A stretch of DNA of 63,483 bases, the filler included, from Klebsormidium nitens (Eukaryota > Plantae > Klebsormidiophyceae): the NCBI GenBank assembly GCA_000708835.1. It is 4 parts of 4 records of this genome, joined end to end, with 100 filler letters (N's around TTAATTAATTAA, not from the genome) between each part and the next. Parts side by side here need not be neighbours in the genome. Positions count along the whole stretch, not along the records: positions 39,601 to 59,811 come from DF237651.1; 3 more parts are not named here. One strand, written 5' to 3'. Shown piece after piece: positions 37,369 to 59,811 of the stretch. The translations under genes were made by a program, and so were the position numbers. Position 1 is the first letter of the stretch, and each line of letters opens with the position of its first letter. Below the pieces are notes generated by a model. That model worked only from the letters and a program-made list of their open reading frames with translations. It was not told where the DNA came from and did not search any database.

Positions 37369-39780
37369 ATATGATCTCGGCAAAACATGGCACCTTGCCA
37401 CAGCCTTCCAAGTCGTATTCTGACGCTACAGCTACCGGTTATTTGGATTTCACGGGACAGATTTTTCCGATCCGCATCGCTTTTAGTAAAGGGTATCTGC
37501 ACGCAGCTTGTCAATGTGATCGGTGAACTTGATAAGAGACGTATTACGCTCTGCCTGTCTCGGACTCACCCTTCCGCAAACCGCAAGCAATCTATCCGCA
37601 GTTTTTTGATGAAATCTTGATCTTCCAACACCCTTGCTATCAGTCGGAAACAGTCCCGTTGGCGTGCGTGAAAGGACGCTGTTTCGACAAGGCCTCTACG
37701 AGTCTGCACAGCCCCCAAAAGCCAGCGTCGCTTTCACCCCGGACATCACCACGTGTCACGATCGAGGAACGGCAATACCAGTGCGCTGCGAGCATCGGAT
37801 ATGCCAGCTTGCTTCTTGAGTTTCTGAACGCTCTCTCAATTGGCCTCAAGAAGGAGAAACATGACATTCCGAAACCGATGTTCCTGTGGCTACAAAGTCG
37901 CACAGCACCAGTCGGAGCTGTCAGGGTGAACTTTTGCGTTGCCTTTCTACGATATTTGCCCATCTTCATTCTCTAATACACTTGCTGGCGACTTTGTCCT
38001 TCGTTAAGATCTCCGCCACAATCACGCATGCGCTTCGGTCTTGAGTGACCACAAACCAGCCTCTCGACAATCTATGCGTGAGAAGCTGTGCAGAACGGCC
38101 GCGCAATGCGACTCAGGCGCAAAGGCATCTCGACTCTTGGGAATGAGTGACGACGTGGCAAGGGCTCATTTGAGAGCCGTAGTGGATAAGCATGTATAAT
38201 TTGGCAGCACGCCACTCCACTGGAAGCTGACAGTACTTGACGCCGCAGCTCTAGAAAGCGTTCGTGCGTTTATGCGTTATCTGAGACGACGCTGTGACGC
38301 TGAAAGACTCCTTCTCTTTCTGTTCTTAGCGTCTTCTCAGAAAGTTCTGTGCCATCCAGACGAAGCCGCGAAAATCCACCTGCCAAGTCCTTTTACCCGT
38401 TATACCCGTTTGTTATATCCGGAGCCAAAAACATGTCGCTCTTTGTGAAGTTCTGACGCATGGGCTACTTCCCGGGGGTAGGCCGATCGTTTTGAGGTCC
38501 TCTGTGGCTCGTTAGAGCAATTAATATTTAAACTTGAACTGGGACTTCGCGAGGCTTCGCTTCATAAGTCGAGGCTCCGGCGGGGCCATGCTGCAAAGGC
38601 AATGATGTTTCACTTGGTTGGCAGAAGACTGCCACGTCACCATTAAAGTCAGCGACAGATGCCTTATCAGAAATGATAGATTGCAGCACGATCTTACTTT
38701 GGCATGCTTGCACGCTCGATTTTGCTAACCCCGAAGTCCCAAGACGTTCTCTTGAGGCAACTCAAAGGTGATTGAAGCTGCCGACTGCAAGCCTTCTATG
38801 ACTAGTGCTCTGCGTCTGTTCAAGATTCTACCTCTCATGTGTTTATCAGTGCGGATGGTGAATGTCACAAAATCCTCAAGTGCTATTCAAAACGTCTGAG
38901 GTCGACCGTCTACCAGGCAATGATGGAATATTCTCTTGGTGGTGCAGTCTTTCTCCACCAAGCAGAGTGATGAACGCGCACTGAGCTGCTAATGAAACTC
39001 TGTAACCTACTCAAGAATCTGTTGCTCCTCGTTTTTGTCTCCAAAATATACCAACAAGAATGGAAGTGACTTCCAGAAAACTCCGGGGCTCCGTTCTTTG
39101 GCGACGTGTAGCCGACGTCGTTAACAACTTTGAAGAGGTTGGCTTGGACGTTATTCGGTCATTAGACGCGCACAAAAGCCTTGTGGTTCTTCGAAAAAGC
39201 GTTCCAAATTAACCTTCGGGTGAGGCAAAGGCGGGGAAGCACGCGGCCGCATCCTGGTAGGTGCGCTCCGCGCGGCCGCGCTGCCGCGAAGCCATTGCCG
39301 TTGGGGCGCGGCAATCTTTCTAGGCTCCGGAACCGTCCTCCAGAACACTAATCTTCTGAGATGCAAACCGTTTTCGGGGGCGCGGGGCGCTGCTCAAACT
39401 TTGGCATCGGTTCCCGGGCCGATATAAAGTCTGAATTTTAAACCGTCTCCGGGGCTTTCTCCTGATTTTCTGATCTAACCGCTTGCCGCTTGTCTGACTT
39501 NNNNNNNNNNNNNNNNNNNNNNNNNNNNNNNNNNNNNNNNNNNNTTAATTAATTAANNNNNNNNNNNNNNNNNNNNNNNNNNNNNNNNNNNNNNNNNNNN
39601 TCTGAACAGACTGTATGAGTCCTGATGTCCAACCCCCAGCTCCACAGAAGACATCCAAGAAGGTTACCATCTGTCTTGAGGTGGAAGTAGGAGAATAAGT
39701 AGCCTTATAGAGACGCGCAGTGGTATTTGAAGAGCACTCGGTTCAGACCGACTCACTTCTCTCTCAAGTCATGCTATGCT

Positions 39781-40288
39781 ATGGATCTGCAAAAGTTAGT
39801 GAGAGCGCTCCATCAGCGACATGATGACGCCGTCCTCAAGTCCATGTTGAAAGCACAAGCGAAGACCAAGTCGGCAGTGGCTTGGATCAAAACGCACTTC
39901 AATCGAGCAGAGACGAGCACAGGCTTCAGGTTGCATCAGATCGCTGGCCTCTATGAGCACACCACAGGACAATAATGCGACCATCTCGGAAGTCGAAGAG
40001 TGGCTCGATGAGATGGGCATCCATGCGAAGAGCTCTTTCAAGGACAGCAGAGACAGAGCTACCACACCGCTCGTCTGCAAAACCCATCGCCATGTCTCCG
40101 TCATGCTACCATCTAGATGTGCGTCCATATTCCATCCACTCACAAGAGGTGCATTGACGGCACGGGATCTGCGTGATGCGTTGGTCCATGAGCAGCTCAT
40201 ACTTCCCGAAGAAGCGAGCAAGATGGATTTCATAGACCCTTGGAAGAAAGAGCGCGAGGCTCTGGATGAGATCCCCGAGGATGTCTAA
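39781..40288 (+). CDS. Hypothetical protein(s), two overlapping frames
   Basis: MDLQKLVRALHQRHDD.. and MSTPQDNNATISEVEEWLDEMGIH.. look protein-like; no family recognised. Confidence 0.35.
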
Positions 40289-40389
40289 AGCGTGTGCGTG
40301 AAGCAAAAACTGAAGTTGGTCAATGTTCTAGCGTAGCAAGGACGAGTCGTCCTATCTCCTCTCCACGCTCTACACGAATATCATCTCAG

Positions 40390-41995
40390 TCAAACCCGCT
40401 GCGATCGATAGCGGGCTACTTCTTCTGCCAACCGTTGATGGTGGTACGCGTCCTTCCTCGCGCGCGCCTCGAAGGCTTCCAACTTCTGGCGCAACACGAC
40501 GCTCTCCTCCTGCAGAGAGCACGCGTCAAATCACTCAAGGACACGGCTTCTTTCAAGAGGCCTGTGCTAATGTAATCAAGACAGACTACGAAGCGAGTCC
40601 TTGATATGCATTGGATTCCGGTGTCCTTACCTCGACCCTCTCAGCGCGGCGGCGACAATTTGCCGCGATGACTTTCTGCTCCTTCACCTCTGCTTCGAGA
40701 GCAGTCATTCGCTTCTCCATGCTCGCCTTCTGAGCGATCAGAAGTGCAGCGTCAACACCGAAAGACACGAGACCATCCGCCAACCTGTACGGCAGCAAGG
40801 CTTCCTTGGTACCTGCACTCGCCCAGTCCTGTACGAGGCTGCTTTTCAGTTCCCAGTTTGTCCTACGAGCATCGAATCGTTAGAATTTCCAGAACTCCAA
40901 AAATCCTTGATCTCAGCAAAGTGATTGCTGACGATGAGGGTCAACTCGTATCGGCAGCTTTTGCAGTACCAACACCGGAACTTCTCGTACCAGCCACTCA
41001 GTTCTTTGTTACCTTTCAAGAGCGTTTCGAATTGCCACTGTATCCAGACACAGCCAAAACTCTTCTCACACAAGTAAAAAATCTTGTCGACCAGCGTACA
41101 CAACTCATGCAACTCGGCAAGGGAGTCCATGTCAGTGAAAGCCAACAGTACTTTCCCGCGCAAGCTTGAAAGGCGTCTGGGTGTGGTATCTTTCCCTATA
41201 CAAACAATGTACAATGTTGTTCCAAGGAACCCTGCAACTTGGCATCGCGGGTGCAGCGCCCTGCCTAGAACAGACTCACTCTTTTGTGTCTGTTACGAGG
41301 GTTTCCATAGGGTCCTCCTTCACCAGAGGCTGCTCCACGCCCACCTCTGCTGCGAAGGCTTTTGCGTCCGCAACGAGTGCTTCCAACGAGTCCTGCTTCA
41401 CCTTCAGAGGCTTCACCTCGCTGTTGGTGATATCTTTGAGCAGCGAAGGATCCTCTGTCTCCAGCTTCCTCAGGCCCACGTAATGACCATTGTTCCTGAG
41501 CTTTGTGAGCTGAAGATGAATAGGGTCACCACCCGAAAGCCTGGGTGGAGTGTAGACATCTGCCCCTCCTTCCCTGTGAACGATGATGTCCCTCCCCAAG
41601 AATCTGGCTACGCACATAGCCTCCAGGTCACCGGACCACCGTCCAGCTTTCGCAACATTCTACAAGGAAATCGGATGGTAGTCAGCTCAGCCTCTTCTTA
41701 GATTCTCAACCACTCATAGCATGGCATCATACAGAAGACTCACTCTTTGCAGCGATGATGCAGGAGCTCAGAGCCTCACCTCCACTTTGCCAAACTGGAC
41801 CGCCAACTGCAGCTCTTCATCCAGCCCGGCATTGAGCGCAATCTCATGTGCTTTCTTCCTCAGGTGTGGCACGTCGATCGACAGGTGCGCTGAAGCGATG
41901 ACAGCCGAGAAGAAGCAGTCTCCATCACGGGGAACGTCCATCACCTCATAGCCGGCTACCAGAGAGACGGGCGCGTGCCTCCTGCGCGCTACCAT
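40390..41995 (-). CDS. OTU-family cysteine protease with coiled-coil tail, 4 exons (41995-41780, 41659-41280, 40862-40631, 40509-40390), 315 aa
   Basis: DVPRDGDCFFSAV (Cys loop), WSGDLEA, NNGHYVG (His); all GT-AG with consistent phases 0/2/0. Confidence 0.75.
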
Positions 41996-42333
41996 GGTGC
42001 TCAAAGATATGAATCCCTCGATAAAACGTGACCGGGACGACCTGGAATCCTCTTTCTCTCCTCACATTCTCTCCTCAACCCTATTCCGGGCTCTTTCAAG
42101 TCTTGATTACCACCCAGTCCGATTCTTTGGGCAGTGACCGAATAAGGGCGAAAAATTTGCCGCGCAAATCCTACGCGGCAATAATACGAATTTTACACGT
42201 GCAAAAAGTACCGACCGTCGATATTCGCCGCCAATTCGTCAAACCCTAGACCACAGTGCTGTGTGGTTCTGCCTACATTATGGCTGGAAGTTTGATTTGA
42301 GAAGCAGACTGAAGAGTAGGCACCAGGGGGGAG

Positions 42334-44840: not shown

Positions 44841-45266
44841 CCGCGTTTGTATGGACTAACTTTCTTCCTTAAGGGATAGTATGCTAACACATGTTGCATC
44901 ACTGGGCTTCGCTGACCTTGGACCTTTGCTCCTAGAATACCCCGTCGCAAAACGGATAGAGACCTTCATTCAAAAGGCACCATCTCAGTCCTCCGATGGG
45001 ACCTCAGTGATTCAGCTCGCGAGGTGTTCCGCAGGTGTACTCGTTATGGGCCGAAGGTCTACGGTATAGCTAGGGAGTCACAGCAAGTGATGTCCTAAAA
45101 ACGAAAAGTTTCTTCTGGTACCAGGCCAGCCCTGGCGGCCAGAGGAAAGCCAGTCAACTCTGGTATTATTATCATTTCTCGCTCCGATTCGTCACCTGCG
45201 TTACGTCAAAGAGGCGACAGTTTGGGCGAAACTGGTAATAACGAGAGAATGTGTCTTTCAACGGTG

Positions 45267-45780: not shown

Positions 45781-47835
45781 ATGCCAACGTTCAAGGGAGA
45801 ACTGAGTGCGACCAGGAACCCTTCAAACGAGCTGGCTTTCATCTTTAAGGCGTGGACCAGCGACTCTGCGGGGGATCCCGTCCACGAAAAGGCCGACACG
45901 TACCCGTTTCCCGGTGTGACTGATTTCGAAGCTCTATGTGCTGAAATCTTCTCGACGGTCGAGGAGTTCTGCAAGAGGAGCTCTTCAGACACCACGCCGG
46001 CGTCCGAGGACCAGCCCGCGTCCGATTCCACGCCCTCCGATCAGCCCCCGGCTGCGGACCAACCAGCTGCAGACGAACCCGCCGACCAGCCCCCGGTTGC
46101 GGACCAACCAGCTGCAGATTCCACGGCCTCCGATCAGCCCCCAGCTGCAGACCAACCAGCTGCAGATTCCACCCCCTCTGATCAGGTCCCAGCTGCGGAC
46201 CAACCAGCTACAGATGAGCCCTCAGACCAGTCCCCGGCTGCGGACGAACCAGACCAACCAGCTGCTTCAGAAAAGCCCTCAGACCAGCTCCCGGCTGCAG
46301 ACCAACCTGCTACAGACAAGCCCGCCGACCAGGCCCCGGCTGCAGATCAGCTCGCGTCCGAATCTACGGCCTCCCCAGCTGCAGATTCCACGCCCTCTGA
46401 TCAGCCCCCAGCTGCAGACCAACCAGCTGCAGAGTCCACGCCCTCTGATCAGCCCCCGGCTGCGGATCAGCCAGCTGCAGATTCCACCCCCTCCGATCAG
46501 CCCCCAGCTGCAGACCAACCAGCTGCAGATTCCACGCCCTCCGACCAGCCCCCAGCTTCGGACCAACCAGCTGCAGATTCCACCCCCTCCGATCAGGCCC
46601 CAGCTGCAGACCAACCAGCTGCNNNNNNNNNNNNNNNNNNNNNNNNNNNNNNNNNNNNNNNNNNNNNNNNNNNNNNNNNNNNNNNNNNNNNNNNNNNNNN
46701 NNNNNNNNNNNNNNNNNNNNNNNNNNNNNNNNNNNNNNNNNNNNNNNNNNNNNNNNNNNNNNNNNNNNNNNNNNNNNNNNNNNNNNNNNNNNNNNNNNNN
46801 NNNNNNNNNNNNNNNNNNNNNNNNNNNNNNNNNNNNNNNNNNNNNNNNNNNNNNNNNNNNNNNNNNNNNNNNNNNNNNNNNNNNNNNNNNNNNNNNNNNN
46901 NNNNNNNNNNNNNNNNNNNNNNNNNNNNNNNNNNNNNNNNNNNNNNNNNNNNNNNNNNNNNNNNNNNNNNNNNNNNNNNNNNNNNNNNNNNNNNNNNNNN
47001 NNNNNNNNNNNNNNNNNNNNNNNNNNNNNNNNNNNNNNNNNNNNNNNNNNNNNNNNNNNNNNNNNNNNNNNNNNNNNNNNNNNNNNNTGCAGATTCCACC
47101 CCCTCCGATCAGGCCCCAGCTGCAGACCAACCAGCTGCAGATTCCACGCCCTCTGATCAGCCCCCGGCTGCGGACCAACCAGCTGCAGATTCCAAGCCCT
47201 CCGATCAGCCCCCGGCTGCGGACGAACCAGCTGCAGTTTCCACCCCCTCTGATCAGGCCCCATCTGCGGACCAGCCAACTGCAGACAAGCCCTCAGACCA
47301 GTCCTCGGCTGCAGATCAGCCCGCGTCCGAATCAACGGCCTCCCCAGCTGCAGATTCCACCCCCTCCGACCAGCCCCCAGCTGCGGACGAACCAGCTGCA
47401 GATTCCACGCCCTCTGATCAGCCCCCGACTGCGGACGAACCAGCTGCAGATTCCACCTCCTCTGATCAGCCCCAAGCCGCAGACAAGCCCTCAGACCAGC
47501 CCCCCGCTGCAGACCAACCAGCTGCAGATTCCACGCCCTCCGATCAAGCCCCAGAGGAAGCTGAACCCACCGAGCCAGAAGCAGCAGCACGCGAATATGC
47601 TTATCTGGATGATGATGCTAGTACGTTCCAGATCAAACGTGCTGGACCTACGAAGTACGAGGTGTCCACTACCTACGAAGTCTGGGCATCGGAGAAGGAT
47701 CATGCAGATGGACGTCCTTCGATCCGGACGGAACCGATCCGCATCGTCATGTCTCTGTGGGACTTCCCACACATGTACGGTCGCATGCACGCGGAGATGA
47801 AAGAGAAGCATGCGGGGAAAACCAACCCATTATAA
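45781..47835 (+). CDS. Pro/Ala/Asp/Ser-rich repeat protein spanning a gap
   Basis: 16-aa unit ADSTPSDQPPAADQPA (48 bp) in many degenerate copies between short unique termini. Confidence 0.8.
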   Translation: MPTFKGELSATRNPSNELAFIFKAWTSDSAGDPVHEKADTYPFPGVTDFEALCAEIFSTVEEFCKRSSSDTTPASEDQPASDSTPSDQPPAADQPAADEPADQPPVADQPAADSTASDQPPAADQPAADSTPSDQVPAADQPATDEPSDQSPAADEPDQPAASEKPSDQLPAADQPATDKPADQAPAADQLASESTASPAADSTPSDQPPAADQPAAESTPSDQPPAADQPAADSTPSDQPPAADQPAADSTPSDQPPASDQPAADSTPSDQAPAADQPAXXXXXXXXXXXXXXXXXXXXXXXXXXXXXXXXXXXXXXXXXXXXXXXXXXXXXXXXXXXXXXXXXXXXXXXXXXXXXXXXXXXXXXXXXXXXXXXXXXXXXXXXXXXXXXXXXXXXXXXXXXXXXXXXXXXXXXXXXXXXXXXXXXXXXXXXXXXXADSTPSDQAPAADQPAADSTPSDQPPAADQPAADSKPSDQPPAADEPAAVSTPSDQAPSADQPTADKPSDQSSAADQPASESTASPAADSTPSDQPPAADEPAADSTPSDQPPTADEPAADSTSSDQPQAADKPSDQPPAADQPAADSTPSDQAPEEAEPTEPEAAAREYAYLDDDASTFQIKRAGPTKYEVSTTYEVWASEKDHADGRPSIRTEPIRIVMSLWDFPHMYGRMHAEMKEKHAGKTNPL

Positions 47836-49476
47836 GTCGCGGCTCTGAAGTCCAAAGACTTCGTCCGATACGTCCGCGTCTGCTGAATACATCGGTGCTT
47901 CGTATCTATGGATGGCATTGGGTCCTGCCATCTCTAACTCATCTTCGCTCTCCGAATCTAGTTCTTCCTCGGACGTGGCCGAATCGCTCTCGTCCCCGTG
48001 TAAGCCATCAAGCCTCCGCAGCGGATCTGGATCGTAGAAGGGGTTCAAGACCTTGTCGTCGAAATGCCCCCTCATCTTCGGGATGAGGTACCTCACTACC
48101 ATGATCAGGTTGTGATTCACGCCGTGAAACATGTACAGCTGCTCCCCGTTGGGTCTGTAAAAGTTCAGCGTCATGGAACTCAGTTGTCCTATCGGGTGGA
48201 ATCTCCTGTAAGGCACGCTCGAGTAATCGAAGCGGGACGTGGCATAACCCACTACGGCCAGTTTGAACAGCGCAAGTCCGAAGCTGTGCTTCTCGTAAGA
48301 GCGGCCTTTGTAGATGTGGGACTCGATCTCCGGAATTCTAAGCACGCAGTACGAGTCTCCCACTAGATTCAATATACCAGGAGCCTGGATGGTCTGCGTT
48401 CCTTGAGAGACCACTACGGTCATGACGACGCTCTTGTTCGTTATGTCCTGACCCGAAACGGCCGCGTTGGTCCAAGTGCTTCCGTCGGTAGAGTAGAGAA
48501 GTTGATTTGCACTGGCTATGATGGGCGTGCCATAGTACAGATCCACCTCTCCGACCGTAGTCGAACAAGAATACACCAGCCAGTATTCGACGCCCGCGGT
48601 TATCGCCGCTCCGATCGAACTTATGTCGCCACTCGTGGTGAACCCGGATATGCTCTGATCGGGGGTCGGGTAATTCAAGGCGGGGATTTGCGCGCCCGAG
48701 TAGAGAATCGCACCGGGTTGCTCTTGTACGGGATCGTTGCTGGTTATGAACCAATCTATGACCCTATCATCAGCGTCGCTCGTGACCGCGCAGGCGATGC
48801 GGATCTCTTTCAAGAGACCCGTCTTGGTCGCTACGAATTTCTGAGCGATGTACTCGACTGTAGAACCGTTAGGGCCTGCGAAAGGAATGGCTAATTCTAC
48901 CGCTTGAGGTCCCTCGAAAGCAAACACTTGTACTTCGTTCTCGGTTATGCTGCTATACGTGCCGGGACTCGAGTATGGGTCCAAGCAGCGGAACCTATCG
49001 TTCAAGTATTCGTGTCCTGCAGCATCCTCATCGAATCCCAGGACGGCGCGTATGGTCGAAGAGCCCATGAGAAAGTGAAATGGCGTCGGAGATGTGAATT
49101 TCAGCATGTTACGCAACTCTGGCGGGTTCGATTCTGCTACCGTAGTGATGCCACGTAGAGATAGTTTGTCATTCAGAGCAGCGATGAGCGAGGTGTCCGT
49201 ATGATCTCCGTTTGCAATCTGGATGATCTCCGGTCCATTGCCAACATCTACGACGAGACTGTTATTCACTTCATCGACGCTGTATTGCGTCCTAGGAATC
49301 GTTGCATCCACGACATCTATGCCGATGACTTGACGGAAAGGCGAATCGAAAGTGATCTGATACTGGTTAGGATAAGGCCAAGTACGTCTGTCACGAGTAC
49401 TCGAATTTACATTGTACATGTAGCTCTCTTCGATACTGTTCTCCATGAGATACTGAATATCTTCTATACTCCCCAT
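47830..49476 (-). CDS. DUF5901-like / putative penton (minor capsid)-type NCLDV protein
   Basis: N-terminus SIEDIQYL..NSSTRDRRTWPYPNQY.I.F..PFRQVIGIDVVDATIPRT; C-terminus FHPIGQLSSMTLNFYRPNG.LY.FHGVNH. Confidence 0.75.
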   Translation of the reverse strand: MGSIEDIQYLMENSIEESYMYNVNSSTRDRRTWPYPNQYQITFDSPFRQVIGIDVVDATIPRTQYSVDEVNNSLVVDVGNGPEIIQIANGDHTDTSLIAALNDKLSLRGITTVAESNPPELRNMLKFTSPTPFHFLMGSSTIRAVLGFDEDAAGHEYLNDRFRCLDPYSSPGTYSSITENEVQVFAFEGPQAVELAIPFAGPNGSTVEYIAQKFVATKTGLLKEIRIACAVTSDADDRVIDWFITSNDPVQEQPGAILYSGAQIPALNYPTPDQSISGFTTSGDISSIGAAITAGVEYWLVYSCSTTVGEVDLYYGTPIIASANQLLYSTDGSTWTNAAVSGQDITNKSVVMTVVVSQGTQTIQAPGILNLVGDSYCVLRIPEIESHIYKGRSYEKHSFGLALFKLAVVGYATSRFDYSSVPYRRFHPIGQLSSMTLNFYRPNGEQLYMFHGVNHNLIMVVRYLIPKMRGHFDDKVLNPFYDPDPLRRLDGLHGDESDSATSEEELDSESEDELEMAGPNAIHRYEAPMYSADADVSDEVFGLQSRDL

Positions 49477-49527
49477 GGTTCTACTCGCTGTCTACGAAAA
49501 AGAGCGCCTATACCTGGACGAAGGCAC

Positions 49528-51338
49528 CTAGAGTATGCGCCTGCGCTTGGCGCTTTCCTCTTCTCCTGAACTATGAAATTCTTTGATCTCCTTCAGGAGG
49601 ACTGCTCTGATGTTCCGTTCTGTGACCTCCACCGTGGAGTCTTCGTAGTAGTCGGTCGTCATCTCCTCTCCGCAGTCGGTGTCGGTCCGGGCGTCCCCGA
49701 AGTAAGGGTGCCTCAACGCTTCCTACAGCAACACGAGACTCATAAGAACTTATAGTACAACCTGATCTCTGCTTCGATGGGACACACGGGAAGCTCATCT
49801 ACGATGCTCCATCCCCGTTTCTCGTAATGACGCCGCAGCGCAGCTTTTCCTCGCAGGAACTTCCCGTCCAGTGGATCCCGAAACACGAATTCTAGCTGAC
49901 CAAGCGCGCTGTGCTCCATGTATACCTCTACACCGTGCTTCCTAGCATTGCTGAGAGTTGGTAGGCGAGAGGCTTTGTCCTTGACGGTGCTTTGGAGACT
50001 GAGAGTTTCGACGTATATGTGCAGCGTGCCTATGTTTGACGTTGAGAGCCTCTTCTTCCTGGCATTGTTGCGCTTCTGGACGCCTTGTGGAATCTTGACC
50101 TTGATCTCCATCTTTGAAATGCCACTGAGAAGCTTCTAAAGTTCCTTATATGGCCATCGTGTGACTTTCGGGCGCTCTTTTCGGACGCTTCGGTCGTAGG
50201 GGCCCGAACATCTTTTCGTGTGCCGTTTTTCGGACGGTGTCTATCGATATACGGACGATTCGGTTTCGGACGCAAATTTTCGGGCGCCAGAGAAGTAGCT
50301 CACCTTGGCCGTAATCCTCTTGGACGGGTCGAATCGAAGCAGCTGCTCGAGCAGGTCACGTGCCTCCGCGGAAGCACTGGGGAAACGGGCCTCCAGCGAA
50401 ACACCGGCAGAGTGGGGAGCTAGATCCCAGATGTAAGCCTTGGCTCTATCGTTCCCCACGAACTCGAGGTCCTCTTCCAAGGGGGTTCCCACGAACCTCA
50501 CGATCAAGCGCAGCTGTTCCAGGTAGTTTTTCCCAGGGAAAAGGACTGACCCAGCAAGCAACTCCCCAAAGATGCAACCCACCGCCCAGATATCGATCTC
50601 CGGCCCATACATGTCCTGCGAGATGAGCAGCTCTGGCGCCCGATACCACCTGGTGACGACGTATTCCGTCATCGGCCCATAGAGATTCTGGTTCCGTGCC
50701 AGGCCTAGGTCGCAGATCTTCAAGGTGCTGTCGTAGTTGATCAGGCAGTTGGAGGGTTTCAGGTCCCTGTGGATCACCCCTCTTTCGTGCATGTACTGGA
50801 CCCCTTTCAGCAGCTGCACGAACAGAACGCTCCTTTGATTTACGCAGAGAAGAGCGATCGTTTGCAACCAATGCACAGAAGCGGACCGATGCTGAGAGAT
50901 GCTCACGCGAATGAGAGGATGTAGAAGTATTCATACCTGATGGACGAGGATCCTGACGTGTTCCCCGCTTATGGCCAGCGTCCTCATCGCTCTGTGCAAG
51001 TCAATGTCCATGAGCTCTGTGACTATGTAGACGTCATGAAAACCCTTGTCTGCCGGTCTCATTACGTCTTTGATGCCGATGATGTTGTCGTGCTTTAGAT
51101 TTTTCATGATGCGCAGTTCTCTCACTGTCCTCTGCGCTTCCAACTTATTTTCCGTCGCATTGATGATCTTTTTTATGGCGACTTCTGCACCCGTCCTCAC
51201 GTCCTTCGCCGCACAGACCACTCCGAAAGCGCCTTTGCCTACAAGTCTGATGCACTCGTATCGCTCGTCCACCTCGAAAAGGTGACCCTCCAGGCGGTAG
51301 CGGCGCTTCCCAGACGGGCAATCCTTGGAGCTCGCCAT
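49528..51338 (-). CDS. MPK: MAP kinase, TEY type, 3 exons (51338-50937, 50813-50304, 49722-49528), 368 aa
   Basis: GKGAFGVV, VAIKK, HRDLKPSN, DLGLAR, MTEYVVTRWYRAPE; splicing restores HQ|LLKG and RITAK|EALRHPYF. Confidence 0.92.
49740..50111 (-). CDS. MBD-like (methyl-CpG-binding fold) protein nested in MAPK intron 2
   Basis: LGQLEFVFRDPLDGKFLRGKAALRRHY aligns with the MBD motif [25 protein letters not shown]; basic NLS-like RKKR; 123-aa ATG-to-stop ORF. Confidence 0.65.
   Translation of the reverse strand: MEIKVKIPQGVQKRNNARKKRLSTSNIGTLHIYVETLSLQSTVKDKASRLPTLSNARKHGVEVYMEHSALGQLEFVFRDPLDGKFLRGKAALRRHYEKRGWSIVDELPVCPIEAEIRLYYKFL
50166..50286. promoter_or_regulatory. Array of five TTTCGG[AG]CG motifs upstream of the nested MBD-like ORF
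   Basis: Copies at 50166, 50179, 50228, 50264, 50278; TATA-like CATATAAG just upstream of the ORF on the minus strand. Confidence 0.55.
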
Positions 51339-51701
51339 CCTCTCCCGAATTAAAAAGTCAAAGGGTCCCTACTTTCGGTCTTAAATACCCACACCCATCT
51401 CGGACGCCTCCCTCTGCCCGAGCACCCGAAAGAGTTTCACCGTCCGAAAGTAAGCGTACTCTACTCCTCTGATCGCAAAAAGAAGTCTTTCCGATCGCAG
51501 AATGGAGAGATGGATCAGCATACGGTCTATTCGCCGACACCTAGGAAGCGCTGCGTCAGCATAGAGGCTCTGGGATGTAAGCTGCTCATCAAGCACGCGA
51601 GGATAGCAGAGAAGCCAGCAGAGAATGTCGTCGCGCTGAGGATCCTCGATCACGAGTCCAGACGGGATCGCGGCATAGCTAGAGAGAGTCTTCGCAGTCG
51701 A

Positions 51702-52085
51702 TTACAGCGGCGGAAGCTCCTGGCGTCGGCCAGAGATGTCTGCGCCTCGGAGGTGGAATCTCTTCAGTCTGGCAAAGGTCGCTTCGTCGATCTTGATCTT
51801 GATGTGGCAATGGAAATGCGTCTTCCACTGCCCCAAGTTGTAGGTCAGAGAGCAGTCGCTGCAGCCAGAATAGGCTCTGACCATCTCGATGGCCTCTAGG
51901 AGGATGGCTTTGAGGTCTTCTCCAGGCAGGTCCGTCAGGTGTTCCACGTGCAGGAAGGGTGTATAGATGAAGTACCGTCGATTTTTTAGGTCAAAGTGCA
52001 GGCGTCCGAGCTTACCATCTTTGATTATATGGGACACTATACGAGGCGACACGTCTGGTGAACAAGTGTAACAGACTCTTTCCAT
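51702..52085 (-). CDS. HIT-like (histidine triad) protein
   Basis: N-terminal CYTC, PFLHVEHLTDL, NLG..THFHCHI (HxHxH). Confidence 0.7.
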   Translation of the reverse strand: MERVCYTCSPDVSPRIVSHIIKDGKLGRLHFDLKNRRYFIYTPFLHVEHLTDLPGEDLKAILLEAIEMVRAYSGCSDCSLTYNLGQWKTHFHCHIKIKIDEATFARLKRFHLRGADISGRRQELPPL

Positions 52086-52387
52086 CACTTTACCTTCCGC
52101 GTTCTATCCAGATAACTCGACAGTGCACCCGTGAGGGACCCTGCCACGATGAGAGTGCTCGTGAGTGTCGCATCAGAGAGATGAGCGGAAGCGTTTCTCA
52201 GAGTGATGCATGTGCCGGATGTGGACGTGATCATGGACCGGAAGAAACCAGCTGAGCAGTAATTCTCGTGCAGCTTGTCGAGGACGAATCTCAGTGAATG
52301 ACAGCTCAAGAATACCCCGCCGGCGGAAAGGATGGGCGAAATAAAAGTGTATCCTAGTCTTACAGCAGCTTTGGCACAGTCCTTCAT
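52085..52387 (-). CDS. Small hypothetical membrane protein, NCLDV-like
   Basis: Two hydrophobic segments around LHENYCSAGFFRSMITSTSGTC; stop overlaps the next ATG (TGATG). Confidence 0.6.
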   Translation of the reverse strand: MKDCAKAAVRLGYTFISPILSAGGVFLSCHSLRFVLDKLHENYCSAGFFRSMITSTSGTCITLRNASAHLSDATLTSTLIVAGSLTGALSSYLDRTRKVK

Positions 52388-52446
52388 AGAGGACTTGCCC
52401 TATATAGTGACCGTATACTAAATTTCCACCGCAGGAACGCAGTTTC

Positions 52447-52998
52447 ATGGACGAAATAGCGAAAATACCTCCTAAAGCTCGGATCATGCACGTCCCTGGC
52501 GACGGGAGTTGCCTCTTTCACAGCGTCTTTCTAGCTTTCTATGACTGCTGCAAGGGGCTGCATAACGTGAAGTATACTGAGAAGGCACTCGTAGATGCCT
52601 CCAGTCACCTGAGGGGATTGGTCGTGGATTACGTACTCGAGCACTACAGGAAACCCCTCGGGGGCATTCCTGGGAACATGTGCGGGCGAGAACTGATAGC
52701 ATTAGAGTATGCATCAGACGCAACGGACGGAGAAGGCAGCGTACGTGGACCTTCTACGTATGCGCGCATGATGAGGAACACCAACAAGTATGCGGGGATC
52801 ACGGAGCTACATGCATTGAGTGCCTTGTTGGATGCCGTCATCGTGGTCCATTACTCGGGAGGGGATGGGCGGCACGAACTCTTAGACACTCTCAAGAGAG
52901 GACCCTCGCACCTCATCATCTTGCACGTGTTGTTCGACCCCCAGACTAAGCACTACTCGCCGATCCTATGCAGCGAGCTTTCGACCGAGAAGGGTTAA
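52447..52998 (+). CDS. OTU-family cysteine protease, intronless
   Basis: HVPGDGSCLFHSV, YAGITELHALS, KHYSPI. Confidence 0.88.
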   Translation: MDEIAKIPPKARIMHVPGDGSCLFHSVFLAFYDCCKGLHNVKYTEKALVDASSHLRGLVVDYVLEHYRKPLGGIPGNMCGRELIALEYASDATDGEGSVRGPSTYARMMRNTNKYAGITELHALSALLDAVIVVHYSGGDGRHELLDTLKRGPSHLIILHVLFDPQTKHYSPILCSELSTEKG

Positions 52999-53046
52999 AA
53001 GTTTCTCTTCCCAGAGATCTCATCGTTTATGTCTCTCAGTAGCTCT

Positions 53047-55798
53047 TCATGTCGCTGCCAAGTCTATCGGAGCGGTCCACACATACCCTTGGATGGGGTT
53101 GTAGATGCTGATCCTGTTGACCACCATCCCCTTCAACCTCGCCAGAGCCGCATACGTCAAAAGCTGCAGCACCCACGGCGCTTGGATACCACTCTTCTCC
53201 GCGCTGCACTTGATGTCGAGGATGCAGTCTCCCACGATGAGGTCCGCCACACCACGCAACGACTCGGTGGAGAGGTCCGTGTCGGTCGCCACCCCGAACA
53301 ACTGGTACATATCGTCCGGGGTGATGACCACTGGCAGCATGTCCACGGCTCCGTGCGACTCCAGGTGCTTTTCGATGATCGCCTCCACGAAGCGCTTCGT
53401 GCAACCGAATAGGCCTAGGTTCTTATCCTTGGACAGATCTCCCAGGTGGAGGTCGGTGAACGCGAAGTAAGTCCTGGCCAGTGGATATACCAGGTGCGCG
53501 CACACCGCTACGTCAGTGATCTTGCGGAGCGCTCTCCTACTCTCCGTGTCGTGGTCGAAGCCGATGTACTCCTTGTAACTCTCCCGGATGCGCTTCAGCG
53601 TATCCTCGAACCGCTTCGTGCGGAGCAGGGAGTCCTTGCTGCTCTTTGCAAATGCAGGAAGGCTCCTCCCGTCAAAGTGCATGACGATCCTCGTAGGGTC
53701 CACATCGAACTCGGCCGCCAGGGAGCGGACCATGCCCTCCACCTGTTCGGGGGTCGGCTCCGGCAGAGTCCAATTGTCTTCGAATGCCTTTACCCAGAGG
53801 AAGCACTTGTCCGCGAAGTGATCCGTCATCTTGACGGGATGCCCCTCCAAGTGGCTCAGACGCAGACACGCAGACATGACATGCCTATATATGACCCTTT
53901 CCACCGCAGAACCGTAGAGTATGTTGGTGTCGCCCGAAGCTGGGAAGCCGTGCACGGCGTGGAGCCTTTCGAAGGTCGCTCCGGGGTACGTCCGAGGGAT
54001 GACCCCACGCTGCTTCGAGCGGTCGTAGAATTCGCCCGAAGCGTGGCGGACGAAGTTGGTGACCGACCTGTTGGGCGGCAGCTGCCCGTCCGTGTCTCCG
54101 AACGTCCCAAAGATGGGAGTGGAGGACTTTTCGTCGTCCGTCACCAGTTCGTACGTAGTCCGGCTCGCCGGGAACAGAAGCCGGGTGATGCAGCGGCTGG
54201 GGCTCGTGATCAGCAGGGAGTCCTTGGCTCGCGTACAGGCCACGTAGAAGAGGTTGCGTTCTTGCTCCAGCTCTTCCTTCGTCAAGCACCGGTTGAGCAT
54301 GTCCGTGCAACCTATGACGATCACGGAACGCCACTCGAGCCCCTGCAGAGGATTTATTTTCTGCTGAAAACAATAAAATGGCTTTCAACCCCGTAGATCT
54401 CGCAGTACAGGCGGCATCTGGAATGAAACCGATCAATTGGACGGTCGTCTACGTCCTCGCAGGAGTGGGTGTCTTCTTCGCCCTCCTCATCACAGGCATC
54501 ACGTACGTGGTCATCCCAGCTACGAAGGTGGATCATGACACCGGGCGAAGGAAGAGCAACATGGGAGTGCGTCTTGCGATCACTTTCGTCGTGCTGTCTT
54601 TCTCCATACTGATATGCGGAAGTATCGGGTGGTCCCAAGGAAAGGATCTGGCGACGTGCTGGGCCAATCCGAAATTCTGCGCTGGAACGACGGCGATGGG
54701 CATGGCCGTAGACGATATCTTTGGTCGATCCTAGCTCACCTTCGCTCCGTGCATCGTGCACAGCGTGATCCAATCGCACTGGTCGCCTTTCCTCTTGACG
54801 GGTGTCGGTTCCGAGTCGCCTGTGTAGATCCTCGTCGCGTAACCCAGCTCCGTGAGCTTGTGAGCCAACGTGTACACCTCTCGCTGCGTCCTCGCTATCA
54901 CAGCTATGTCACCCAGGTCCCCTCCCGTCTTCGAGGCATGTGCGGCTACCTTCTCCGTCACGAAACGGACCTCTTCCGCCCGATTCTCGAAGACTGCGAG
55001 TCTGGGAGGCTCGGACGCGCAAGTCCTGACGTGTTTCATGGCATGACTGGATCGATCCGGGCGGATCTCGTTGCAAAAAGCTACCAGTGCTTCCGTACTC
55101 CTGTAGTTGTTCAGGAGCTCGAACGACTCGCAGGGGTAGGTGCCCAGCCGTGCGACCTTGGCCAGGAGGGTCGCATCGGAGGCGCGGAAAGCATAGATGT
55201 TCTGGTTGACGTCGCCCACCGCAAACACCCTCGTCGAATAACGCTCGACCAGCAACCGTATGACGTCGAACTGCGTCTGGTCAAGATCCTGAGCCTCGTC
55301 GACCAGCAGGAAATGGGGCACGAGAGACCGGATGGAATCGGACGTCTCCTGGTCTACCACAGTCCGGAAGGCCCTGAGCAGCCTGTAGATGTGCTCGTCC
55401 GGGAGGAAGACCTCCGATTCTGCGTTGCAGAAGTACGTCTCCTTCTCGCTGGCCACGAAAGCAGCCTCTAGCTTCTCTCCGTCCGCAGACCAGGGGCACG
55501 CATTAGGGAGGGTGAAGCGAGCCCGTCTGAGGATCGGGTCGAAAGCCTCCGCTAGCTCAAGACAGAATGAGTGAATGGTCGATGACTTCACCCCATCGGG
55601 CAGCCTAGCAGACACATCTGCGCTGGCTTGCCTGGAGAAGGTGACCACCCTTATCTTGGACGGACGTACGTCCTTGCACGTCACGAGATGTATGACTCTC
55701 TGCACCAGAGTCCTGCTCTTCCCAGCTCCAGGGCAAGCGGTGACCCTTATGTGCTTCTCGGTGTCCGCTTCTATGATGGGCCGCTGATTCGTGTCCAT
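53047..55798 (-). CDS. UvrD/AddA-like SF1 helicase fused to a PD-(D/E)xK nuclease, 2 exons (55798-54740, 54342-53047)
   Basis: ACPGAGKSRTL, TFSRQA, TIHSF, LVDEAQD, VGDVNQNIYAFR, NYRST, TMHGAK|GLEW, ERNLFYVACTRAK; C-terminal GVADLI..ILDIKCS..LQLLTYA. Confidence 0.9.
54378..54734 (+). CDS. Two-TM membrane protein nested antisense inside the helicase intron
   Basis: 118-aa ATG-to-TAG ORF with A-rich leader AAAACAATAAAATG and two clear hydrophobic helices. Confidence 0.8.
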   Translation: MAFNPVDLAVQAASGMKPINWTVVYVLAGVGVFFALLITGITYVVIPATKVDHDTGRRKSNMGVRLAITFVVLSFSILICGSIGWSQGKDLATCWANPKFCAGTTAMGMAVDDIFGRS

Positions 55799-55904: not shown

Positions 55905-58399
55905 TCAATTGTACATACGGAGGACGTATTCTGGGAGACTGGAGGACTGTAGCCACGGGGCCAGTAGTTCTTGTGTACAAGCGACTCTCTCATTCTCTGG
56001 CACGAACGGTAATATGCTATCGAGCTGCTCCAACAGTCCAGAGGAGGGCGCAAGAAGCCGCAACTTTTTCAGAGGGTTCCTGAACTCCTCCGGAGTCCCT
56101 TCCAGACGGAGCCGTTTCTCCACTGCCACAGGGCTCTGCAGTAGCAGCTGTGCTTGCTTCCAGTAAGCTTCCGTTGGACTCAAACCTTCCCAAATAGTGA
56201 TGAACCCGTCTCGCAAATGGAGTAGGTTGTGCTTCTCCCCGTCGCACAGGTCATAGATGAGAGGAAACGAATTCACTGCCAAAGAAGCAAGATAGCAAAC
56301 CAAGGCTTGTCCTCTGTGTGATCCATATTGGACGGGTCCAGAAGATCCTGCCGACTTGCCACTCTGCAAGAACAAAAATTATCATTTGCGCTCAATCAGT
56401 ACTGCAGCTAAATGCCCAATGCGGAACTCAATTCCACAAAGGTGTATGACTCTGCGTGTTATCCAGTAATTTGTGCATGAGTACTACAACAACGTGCCGA
56501 TTGGTTCATACAACAATCCATGCACATTTGTCGTGCAAACATTGAGAACAACTTACCGCTCCTGCGGAGGTCGAGATACGCTCTCTGTAACGCTGCCTCT
56601 GGTCTTCGGTCTGCTTATGCTCGAAGAGCACTCTGCATTGTCTAGCAGCAGACTCAGCGTACAGACCAAATGGCGCCAGAAGTCCATCTGCAGTGCCTGT
56701 GAACTGGGCTTCATCTGGAGCAGTGATGGCGTAGAGTGTCCGATTTGTATGAATGTCATATATCTGGAAAGCCCCCCGTCCAAAAGGCACCCCATACTTC
56801 TGAAGCTGTCGCTGATGGTGTTCGAGTAGAGCAGGAGTACCAGCGTCTTCGTTGGGGTAAAGGGAGTAATCAAAACTTTCTGCTTCCGGCGTATCTTTCT
56901 GAGGGCGGGACGACTGGATCCTCAGAGTTCCCAGATTCTTCAGCAAAATCCAGTTGGGCCAGGAGCTTCTGAGCTTCCACGGAACCGACCTTGGAGAAAC
57001 TCTTTGGTTTTCTCTCCTCCTGCTTTCGCATCTCTTCAAGCAGCGTCTGCAAGCCTGCTTGGAACTGGTCCACCGTAAGGACCCCACTCATATCAGCCCC
57101 ACCTGCAGCTGCAGAAAGCAGAGCAAGTAATGTATGTAAGCAAGTTCCCCGTAACGCAATTGTTGATTTATTACCATTTTCGCCCAAACTGTCGCCCCTG
57201 TTATGTAATGGGGGTCACAAGAAAAGGCGATGAATAGCAATAATGCCGGAGTTAACTGGCTATCCCTCAGCCGCCCAGCGTCCTTGGTAGGCAGAAACTG
57301 ACCAGAGTAAANNNNNNNNNNNNNNNNNNNNNNNNNNNNNNNNNNNNNNNNNNNNNNNNNNNNNNNNNNNNNNNNNNNNNNNNNNNNNNNNNNNNNNNNN
57401 NNNNNNNNNNNNNNNNNNNNNNNNNNNNNNNNNNNNNNNNNNNNNNNNNNNNNNNNNNNNNNNNNNNNNNNNNNNNNNNNNNNNNNNNNNNNNNNNNNNN
57501 NNNNNNNNNNNNNNNNNNNNNNNNNNNNNNNNNNNNNNNNNNNNNNNNNNNNNNNNNNNNNNNNNNNNNNNNNNNNNNNNNNNNNNNNNNNNNNNNNNNN
57601 NNNNNNNNNNNNNNNNNNNNNNNNNNNNNNNNNNNNNNNNNNNNNNNNNNNNNNNNNNNNNNNNNNNNNNNNNNNNNNNNNNNNNNNNNNNNNNNNNNNN
57701 NNNNNNNNNNNNNNNNNNNNNNNNNNNNNNNNNNNNNNNNNNNNNNNNNNNNNNNNNNNNNNNNNNNNNNNNNNNNNNNNNNNNNNNNNNNNNNNNNNNN
57801 NNNNNNNNNNNNNNNNNNNNNNNNNNNNNNNNNNNNNNNNNNNNNNNNNNNNNNNNNNNNNNNNNNNNNNNNNNNNNNNNNNNNNNNNNNNNNNNNNNNN
57901 NNNNNNNNNNNNNNNNNNNNNNNNNNNNNNNNNNNNNNNNNNNNNNNNNNNNNNNNNNNNNNNNNNNNNNNNNNNNNNNNNNNNNNNNNNNNNNNNNNNN
58001 NNNNNNNNNNNNNNNNNNNNNNNNNNNNNNNNNCTGTAATAATGTTATAGTTTGCGCAGAACAAGATAATGTTCAGTGCAATGTGCTGGACAGACTCGAA
58101 CTTTTTGAAGGATGTACCCTCGAACAGATAGATAAATTCATACTCCAAAGGTAAGGTCACAAACCTGCAGATTGCAGTCGGACCCTCTCGTCTAGCAGCT
58201 TGTTCTTCTCATCGCGCATTTTGTTCTCCGTCTCACGCAACTGCTGTAGCTCTATGGACCACCGTCGCACAGCTTCCAAATTGTTGATTCTCTCCGCACC
58301 CTCGACCTTTTCCTTTGCTTTTTGAATCTGCGGCGCTAGAAGCTGGATACATTCATTCACCTGAGCTATTTCCGAGTTGACTGCCTCCACGGAACCCAT
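55905..58399 (-). CDS. Crinkler-like / restriction-endonuclease-fold protein with coiled-coil N-terminus; 3 exons (58399-58165, 57108-56557, 56363-55905), 1-nt frameshift ~56886
   Basis: N-terminal VEAVNSEIAQV..W..ELQQLR..E; FTGTADG..CRVLFEHKQ; QALVCYLAS..FPLIYDLCDG; GT-AG sites with consistent phases; assembly gap in intron 1. Confidence 0.6.
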
Positions 58400-58972: not shown

Positions 58973-59811
58973 ATGGCCGCCATGTCCGAGCCCGAAGGCG
59001 CCCAGCCATTCGACATGCTTATCAAGAGGTTGACCGACATGGAGGAGATCTCATTCCACCAGGAATGCAGACATACCGGGCGCCTGCAACACCCCATGTT
59101 TGGACCCAATATTAGCTACATTGCCAAGTTCACAGAGGGGCCATTCCTGGAGCAGGAGAGCTATTTGTACATAGACTTTGCTGCAGAAGGTATCGGTGCT
59201 CACAAGATGCTGACGGAGTGGAGAGAAGAGGGGAAGCACTCATTGGGAGGTTGTGTAGAAGATGAGTTCCGTCTGCGGGATAAGGAGGGGGTTCGGTATC
59301 TCAAAGAAGTTTGGAACATCCACACTTACGCCTACAAATTCACAGGGCAAGCTATCGAATATGAACTCGCATCCCAACTGACAAGAAGCGAAAGGTATTG
59401 CTTTAGGGTTGTCCAAATCAGGTCTCAGGATACCAGAGGGACGCTGGTAGTAGAAATGAAGGCAGGTCCAGAACCTTTCAGAGGGATGCAGCCTTTTCAT
59501 TTTTCCAAACTCGTTGCGGACTGCGAAAAGCTGCTCTGCGAGCTGCTGGGAGCGACGGGTGATATATCCCTTCAGGTCTACCCTATCACCTCATCCCTGG
59601 AGCACGCATTCGACGAGGTCATGTCCTGGCTTTGGGAGGAGGAGAAACCGAAAGAGCTGCTGGATGATTTCAAATCCATGTTCAAGGGCTTAGGAAATGC
59701 TAAGAGAGTAGATGAGATTCTGGAAGAGTTAGATACATTGGAGAAGGCCAGTCGCGAAGACTATATCAGTAATCCCAACTTGAGGATCTGCATCAATACA
59801 GTCTGTTCAGA
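58973..59811 (+). CDS. Hypothetical protein, intronless, truncated by gap
   Basis: Open frame of ~280 aa with natural composition; family not recognised. Confidence 0.7.

Follow-up and report, generated by a model that had tools for sequence, protein, structure and literature searches.

In eukaryotes, a nested gene is an independent gene, oriented either way, that occupies a host-gene intron and leaves the host mRNA when this intron is spliced out; the cellular introns that host such genes usually span many kilobases. Among viruses, the spliceosomal introns of mirusviruses house more than 2,000 genes, some of them for homing endonucleases ('shintrons') and others forming MING-1, an orphan family with one fixed site (PMC12768974, Nat Microbiol 2025). 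Nucleocytoviruses generally lack spliceosomal introns, except for decaying endogenous elements, pandoraviruses and a few chloroviruses (PMC12768974). Here we analyze a stretch of 63,483 nucleotides from the Klebsormidium nitens assembly GCA_000708835.1 (hereafter the window), in which a giant-virus-like scaffold carries two small protein genes, nest1 and nest2, inside introns of a kinase gene and a helicase gene. The genome sequence examined is that 20.2-kb scaffold (DF237651.1, positions 39601-59811 of the window, with N gaps at 46623-47087 and 57312-58033). A previous inspection, which we call the sequence-only reading, had proposed that two gene-filled, phase-0 GT-AG introns lie here and that their genes arrive as spliceable cassettes. 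As we show below, the first proposal is borne out by exon homology, by the relatives and by the conservation of the reading frames, and the second is not supported. A literature search found no report of intron-nested genes in nucleocytoviruses: the arrangement is known from mirusviruses and appears here in another phylum, with new cargo families.

Relatives of the scaffold were recovered by protein searches with nest1, nest2 and the neighboring DUF5901 protein, followed by contig look-ups. The syntenic ones are L020/L021 (~78% nucleotide identity), L022, L023 (92%, the window's closest relative) and a 3-kb contig with P0001 and P0107 (proteins only); L001/L002 and L017/L018 are more distant, L017 being a 67.6-kb metagenome contig. 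The two host genes and their contents are as follows.

51338-49528, minus strand: mitogen-activated protein kinase (MAPK)-like kinase gene, three exons and two introns
50937..51338, minus strand: kinase exon 1 (134 aa), matching Pkinase profile positions 1-101
50814..50936, minus strand: kinase intron 1 (123 nt, phase 0, GTATGA...GTGCAG, no open reading frame), at a site common to L020, L022 and L001
50304..50813, minus strand: kinase exon 2 (170 aa), matching Pkinase profile positions 107-255
49723..50303, minus strand: kinase intron 2 (581 nt, phase 0, GTGAGCTA...TGTAG), housing nest1, at the same site in relatives
49740..50111, minus strand: nest1, gene for a 123-aa basic protein, on the same strand as the kinase and open at the same intron position in relatives
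49528..49722, minus strand: kinase exon 3 (64 aa plus stop), starting where the Pkinase profile has 8 positions left
55798-53047, minus strand: UvrD-like SF1 helicase gene, two exons and one intron
54740..55798, minus strand: helicase exon 1 (353 aa), with UvrD-helicase, AAA_19 and UvrD_C matches
54343..54739, minus strand: helicase intron (397 nt, phase 0, GTGAGCTA...CTGCAG), housing nest2, at a site common to L020 and L023
54378..54734, plus strand: nest2, gene for a predicted 118-aa two-pass membrane protein, antisense to the helicase and open in the window, L023 and L020
53047..54342, minus strand: helicase exon 2 (431 aa plus stop), matching the end of the UvrD_C profile

Exons were used as separate queries in homology searches, and removal of the introns gives contiguous in-frame homology in both genes. 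In the kinase, residues 13-134 of exon 1 align to residues 17-141 of Arabidopsis MPK6 (chain 6dtl_A) and exon 2 aligns to residues 142-308, making the first junction contiguous at 141|142. At the second junction the Pkinase profile is covered to position 255 of 263, and 8 positions remain for the start of exon 3 (Pfam); this last exon had no significant PDB match as sole query and is kept directly after the intron in L020, L022 and L001. The helicase junction is anchored by the intronless ortholog of L017, in which the last residue of exon 1 (K353) corresponds to residue 192 and the first residue of exon 2 (G1) to residue 193, at 46% identity for exon 1 and 56% over the 431 aa of exon 2. It could be argued that the insertion of nest1 and nest2 simply broke the kinase and the helicase, with halves that are translated separately or are dead. 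Reading through from helicase exon 1 does meet a stop after 2 codons, and from the upstream kinase exon after 21. However, the homology breaks off precisely at GT and picks up again precisely at AG, neither losing nor gaining a residue, all relatives preserve the GT-AG ends and the phase, and the downstream exons, which have no initial start codon, are nonetheless under purifying selection (ratio of non-synonymous to synonymous rates, dN/dS, of 0.06-0.08 in exon 2 of the helicase and 0.14-0.22 in exon 3 of the kinase). We consider genes split in this way highly improbable.

All three introns have GT...AG ends and phase 0, and are retained at every site covered (window, L020/L021, L022, L023, L001); around these retained ends, the intron sequence diverges between relatives. 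Kinase intron 2 measures 581 nt in the window, 600 nt in L020/L021 and 644 nt in L022, and L001/L002 have at the identical site an intron of 138 nt devoid of any open reading frame (ORF). The helicase intron varies little in length (397 nt in the window, 401 nt in L020, 395 nt in L023) and is absent from L017/L018. Kinase intron 1, a third phase-0 GT-AG intron that the sequence-only reading had not listed, is 123 nt long in the window, 127 nt in L020, 117 nt in L022 and 157 nt in L001, and its sequence is barely alignable between relatives (z=4.2, versus 33-37 for exons). An Rfam search of 39601-59811 at E<=1 returned no family match, introns of groups I and II included. Altogether, the three introns look like U2-type spliceosomal introns, and it is from their sequence that we infer splicing. 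Group I and II introns with homing-endonuclease ORFs, found in giant-virus genes, are comparable in that an ORF-bearing intron sits in a conserved viral gene, but here there is no ribozyme match and no endonuclease domain, and the ends are canonical GT-AG.

The reading frames inside the two larger introns behave as genes. Four lineages keep nest1 open (window, L020/L021, L022 and the P0107 contig), at 51-57% amino-acid identity, with pN of 0.24-0.30 against pS of 0.60-0.76 (non-synonymous and synonymous differences per site) and saturated dS. The stop codon falls 17 nt short of the 3' splice site of kinase intron 2, and the ORF fills 64% of that intron; an ORF of its length arose in 81 of 5000 shuffles of this intron (1.6%). 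nest2 is open in three lineages, namely the window, L023 and L020, with an amino-acid identity to the window of 95% in L023 and 55% in L020. A distance of 35 nt separates its ATG from the 3' splice site of the helicase intron, and donor positions +6 to +8, read on the other strand, form its TAG stop; the ORF therefore fills 90% of the intron, and one of this length appeared in only 11 of 5000 shuffles (0.2%). The nest2 copies of the window and L023 differ by 15 synonymous and 7 non-synonymous changes, distributed 3/2/17 by codon position, for a dN/dS of 0.137 (P=2e-5 against neutrality). A 141-aa ORF on the minus strand also spans the helicase intron, but the codon-position pattern favors the plus-strand frame of nest2 instead. 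Across relatives, the dN/dS of the nested ORFs is 0.12-0.26, so they do not evolve neutrally, and they have stayed open across a synonymous divergence above 1. In DNA alignments of the window with L020, the ORFs reach z ~17 and the ORF-free parts of the introns ~4. Judging from these substitution patterns, nest1 and nest2 are real genes under purifying selection.

As the sequence-only reading had stated, the two cargos are unrelated and are not nucleases: they share no family, and no nuclease domain was detected with Pfam, even at E<=5, nor by any significant PDB sequence match. Endonucleases of the HNH, GIY-YIG, LAGLIDADG, VSR and PD-(D/E)XK types were among those looked for in the cargos, and none was detected. 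In nest2, two hydrophobic segments are accompanied by a C-terminal block that contains Cys and is invariant. nest1 is basic (isoelectric point 8.8-9.9); its core is conserved, and K and R residues cluster near its N terminus. It has no Pfam match and no PDB sequence match; a profile search against 1.8e9 representatives retrieved only its own clade and two repeat proteins made of helix-turn-helix-like units (Pfam). Its AlphaFold model is weak and has a core of three strands plus a helix, for which Foldseek found nothing significant, several methyl-CpG-binding domains being among the top matches at E 0.4-0.9. These results offer a lead toward a role in nucleic-acid binding, to be taken as such.

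The distribution of these genes bears directly on how they came to be where they are. In 5.8e9 proteins, in the profile search of 1.8e9 representatives and in IMG/VR, no homolog of nest1 or nest2 was found outside these two intron positions, and this confinement speaks for vertical inheritance rather than mobility. The introns themselves are not sporadic: every close relative that covers a site has them, and they are missing only from the L017 ortholog, at 46-56% identity, although few genomes are available for this comparison. Moreover, the kinase intron can exist without cargo, since L001 has its short version without an ORF. These observations are hard to reconcile with the central hypothesis of the sequence-only reading, that is, a mobile spliceable cassette, akin to an introner or a spliceosomal homing intron, by which a gene enters an essential gene along with its own splice sites and can spread, either to new sites or to alleles that lack the intron.

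That idea drew on the splice sites. Both donors of the gene-filled introns in the window do read AAG|GTGAGCTA, and AAGGTGAGCTA occurs exactly twice in the window, at these same donors (50296-50306 and 54732-54742). Its expected count is 0.34, but the excess is only modest because 3 of 100 shuffles also reach two. The sharing does not extend far: the extended donor GTGAGCTA is limited to the window and L023, its closest relative, L020 having GTGAGTCA as its kinase donor and GTCAGTCA as its helicase donor, L022 GTGAGGCC and L001 GTAAGTCG. Likewise, both gene-filled introns end in the acceptor AG|G, which leaves AGG on either side as had been noted, yet this is a proto-splice site and not a target duplication, because the intronless L017 helicase already reads GCC AAG|GGG CTC at that position. 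The three introns have no terminal inverted repeats (end-to-end scores were no better than those of shuffles), no similarity to each other and no further copies in the scaffold, the search space for introners and repeats being the 20-kb scaffold plus its relatives. Introners also generate new spliceosomal introns, and their AG|G-type flanks can mimic target duplications. They occur in integrated double-stranded DNA viruses (PMC12166617). They differ in forming multi-copy families, many with inverted ends and target-site duplications, neither of which was found here. Two further observations speak for a cassette: the helicase intron is absent from the distant L017 ortholog and always seen with nest2, and the spliceosomal introns of mirusviruses can carry homing genes (PMC12768974). 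Against these stand the donor, which changes in L020 and L022, the kinase intron without cargo in L001, the lack of inverted ends, mutual similarity or other copies, the AGG flank at the intronless site, the vertical distribution of the introns and the fact that neither a nuclease nor a transposase domain was detected. We find a mobile cassette distinctly unlikely.

The giant-virus-like context in which these introns lie, already put forward by the sequence-only reading, is supported. The scaffold itself contributes DUF5901 and DUF5755, and it is the syntenic relatives that carry the hallmarks of nucleocytoplasmic large DNA viruses (NCLDV): a major capsid protein, VLTF3, PCNA, ribonucleotide reductase with an intein, RNase III and an SNF2 helicase. 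In L001, Capsid_N and Capsid_NCLDV domains are found together with VLTF3, and the best PDB matches are the capsid proteins of PBCV-1; judging from these genes, the lineage would fall outside Mirusviricota. The neighbors of the two host genes are the following.

47830..49476, minus strand: DUF5901 protein (548 aa; PF19254, E=7.7e-180), 51 nt downstream of the kinase stop
51702-52088, minus strand: 128-aa ORF between kinase and helicase, syntenic in L020 and L023
52085-52387, minus strand: 100-aa ORF between kinase and helicase, syntenic in L020 and L023
52447-52998, plus strand: OTU-like protease (OTU Pfam match), between kinase and helicase

The last three are all syntenic in L020 and L023, at 80-98% identity, and the scaffold also has a methyltransferase and an F-box-like protein. 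DUF5901 has 106 homologs, mostly metagenomic, of which the nearest named one is in Klebsormidium nitens. The window's own DUF5901 protein had no exact match on record, the cluster names of its NCBI-sourced homologs were uninformative, and a literature search on DUF5901 found nothing. nest1, nest2 and DUF5901 had no match in IMG/VR, and searches for close relatives of the helicase in IMG/VR, JGI metagenome contigs and GTDB genomes gave distant matches or none.

The block spanning 47830-55798 is compact, with spacers of 48-59 nt and a coding fraction of 80% without the nested genes and 89% with them. All its genes are intact in the window, L020 and L023, at dN/dS of 0.03-0.18, which fits a replicating virus or recently integrated copies. 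Broken genes are found elsewhere: L001/L002 have two frameshifts in the kinase, one in DUF5901 and one in-frame stop in the capsid gene, and L017/L018 have one frameshift in the helicase; these relatives are probably integrated or in decay. The DUF5901 gene of the P0001 contig was called as two pieces. The broken genes, the N gaps of the scaffold and the introns reported in decaying endogenous elements (PMC12768974) could suggest a dead endogenous element that acquired its introns and ORFs through processes of the host genome after integration. But the same introns and cargos are present in at least four diverged lineages from different samples, the genes of the block are intact and constrained, and the spacing is virus-like. 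Decoration after integration thus seems unlikely to us. The capsid gene of L001 was also considered as a third gene-filled intron and rejected, as it is a broken gene beside a convergent 2-oxoglutarate oxygenase.

Some features of the scaffold and its relatives stand apart from the nested genes. The ends of the scaffold (39601-39616 and 59796-59811) form a perfect 16-nt inverted repeat that is absent from all 24 retrieved loci; it may be an artefact, from an adapter or from the assembly, or the scaffold (20.2 kb) may truly have terminal repeats. A second inverted repeat of 108 nt (45134-45241 and 57168-57275, 73% complementary) has both arms in gene-free spacers and looks like a small repeated intergenic element. 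Between 45781 and 47835, an N gap interrupts a 684-codon ORF made up of tandem repeats of 48 nt (16 aa, with abundant P, A, D, Q and S); L001 and L020 conserve the unique ends of this ORF. The first part of the scaffold (39601-42330) contains only overlapping ORFs on both strands, with no Pfam match and no match in any relative, and may be non-coding, decayed or intron-rich. The spacer 5' of the kinase (51339-51701) is unusually long, 363 nt (376 nt in L020) against ~50 nt elsewhere in the block, and has a TATA-like box ~50 nt ahead of the ATG. Among the relatives, L020:1-1846 encodes the large subunit of ribonucleotide reductase with an intein (Hint and Intein_splicing domains), and an ORF at L017:19044-19928 has a weak match to a Cas12f1-like TNB domain (TnpB/Fanzor-type).

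The kinase offers a clue to where introns might come from. Its best solved-structure matches are the plant MAPKs AtMPK6 and AtMPK4, which hints at capture from a green-lineage host; given this proximity, its introns may have come with the captured gene, nest1 later arising in intron 2 or being inserted there. Both kinase introns predate the split from L001, and the nearest named homolog of DUF5901 is that of Klebsormidium nitens, two facts that fit such a capture. The helicase intron is left uncovered, as it sits in a typical viral gene whose distant ortholog is intronless. A host origin of the introns is therefore a complement, for the kinase, to the explanation that we prefer rather than its replacement, and we hold it to be possible, if doubtful.

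The explanation that we prefer, and deem probable, is that nest1 and nest2 are long-lived residents of ordinary spliceosomal introns, in a compact virus that resembles phycodnaviruses and has a nuclear phase. It builds on the observed positions of the introns, their conservation, the selection that acts on the ORFs and the lack of signatures of mobility, and would extend from these to splicing, promoters, transcript ends, protein functions and the order of events. In this scenario, the scaffold would be a compact phycodnavirus-like member of Nucleocytoviricota, or a recently integrated copy of one, and at least some of its genes would yield pre-mRNAs spliced by the U2-type spliceosome of the host. 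Two of the three introns in the 8-kb block would be old and vertically inherited, each being the fixed home of an independent, small, lineage-specific gene: a basic protein that may bind nucleic acids and may be nuclear (nest1), and a two-pass membrane protein (nest2). Splicing would take the nested gene out of the mRNA of its host gene, and each nested gene would be expressed from a short promoter of its own. For nest1, this promoter would be intronic and on the sense strand, with a transcript that would probably share the 3' end of the kinase; TATA-like boxes are found 35-50 nt upstream of the nest1 start in the window and L022, and at the same distance from the kinase start in the window and L020. 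Antisense transcription of nest2 would start a short way within the intron's 3' end, and an AT-rich block ~12-25 nt upstream of it is conserved in all three relatives. Most likely, the cargo would have entered, or arisen de novo in, a pre-existing intron without bringing the intron along. Since the kinase intron predates the split from L001, where it is short and empty, nest1 either came into being in, or moved into, an intron already present, or else was lost by deletion from a copy in decay. The net effect would be genome packing, with the coding density of the block rising to its present value.

Several points weigh against this explanation. Splicing and the independent expression of the nested genes are themselves what we infer from sequence, and L020 has no TATA-like box upstream of nest1. 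The nested proteins are 51-57% identical where the host genes are 78-90%, so that the constraint on them is weaker. With a model of nest1 as poor as the one obtained (pLDDT, the predicted local distance difference test, of 49.5), its function is a guess. As regards the order of events, L001 could, as a decaying copy, have lost nest1 by deletion, and the constant company of nest2 in the helicase intron would be compatible with a joint arrival of intron and cargo there.

Set against the described systems, the locus is closest to the intron-harbored genes of mirusviruses, with which it shares protein genes lying wholly inside GT-AG spliceosomal introns of a large DNA virus of protists. It recalls MING-1 in particular: a cargo without known function that keeps to a single site of a single host gene and has been inherited stably over deep divergence. 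It differs in the NCLDV double-jelly-roll capsid (closest to PBCV-1) and VLTF3 of the relatives, which point to another phylum, in its host genes, a MAPK-like kinase and a UvrD-like helicase instead of morphogenesis genes, and in that no endonuclease domain was detected, one cargo is antisense and only two cases are present. Nucleocytoviruses that have a nuclear phase, for instance pandoraviruses (PMC5995976), chloroviruses and the Chlamydomonas punuivirus giant endogenous viral element (bioRxiv 10.64898/2026.10.09.758095), likewise have short GT-AG introns in a minority of genes. The consulted portions of the pandoravirus and punuivirus reports describe introns and not intron-nested protein genes, and the clade studied here is not represented in IMG/VR. 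The difference from the nested genes of eukaryotes is one of scale, as the ORFs here take up most of introns of 581 and 397 nt in a genome where spacers are ~50 nt.

Intron-housed genes have so far been reported for the separate phylum Mirusviricota, and what we describe would be their presence in a phycodnavirus-like lineage. The use of GT-AG introns by a giant virus implies the use of the host nucleus and spliceosome, and the retention of three introns across a synonymous divergence above 1 marks this clade as nucleus-dependent; two of these introns appear to be stable homes for orphan genes under selection. There is also a practical consequence, in that prokaryote-style gene callers split intron-bearing genes and mislabel the pieces. 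A bolder possibility, rather improbable in our view, is that an undescribed clade of nuclear-phase nucleocytoviruses routinely uses introns as gene slots, whose residents are functionally tied to the introns or to the host genes. If that were true, the nest1 protein might act on the RNA or DNA of its intron or host gene, as has been proposed for MING-1, and the antisense transcript of nest2 might gate the helicase, splicing deciding which of the overlapping genes is expressed. Whether or not it is, these two introns provide a small and clean case for how orphan genes may arise or settle in viral non-coding DNA.

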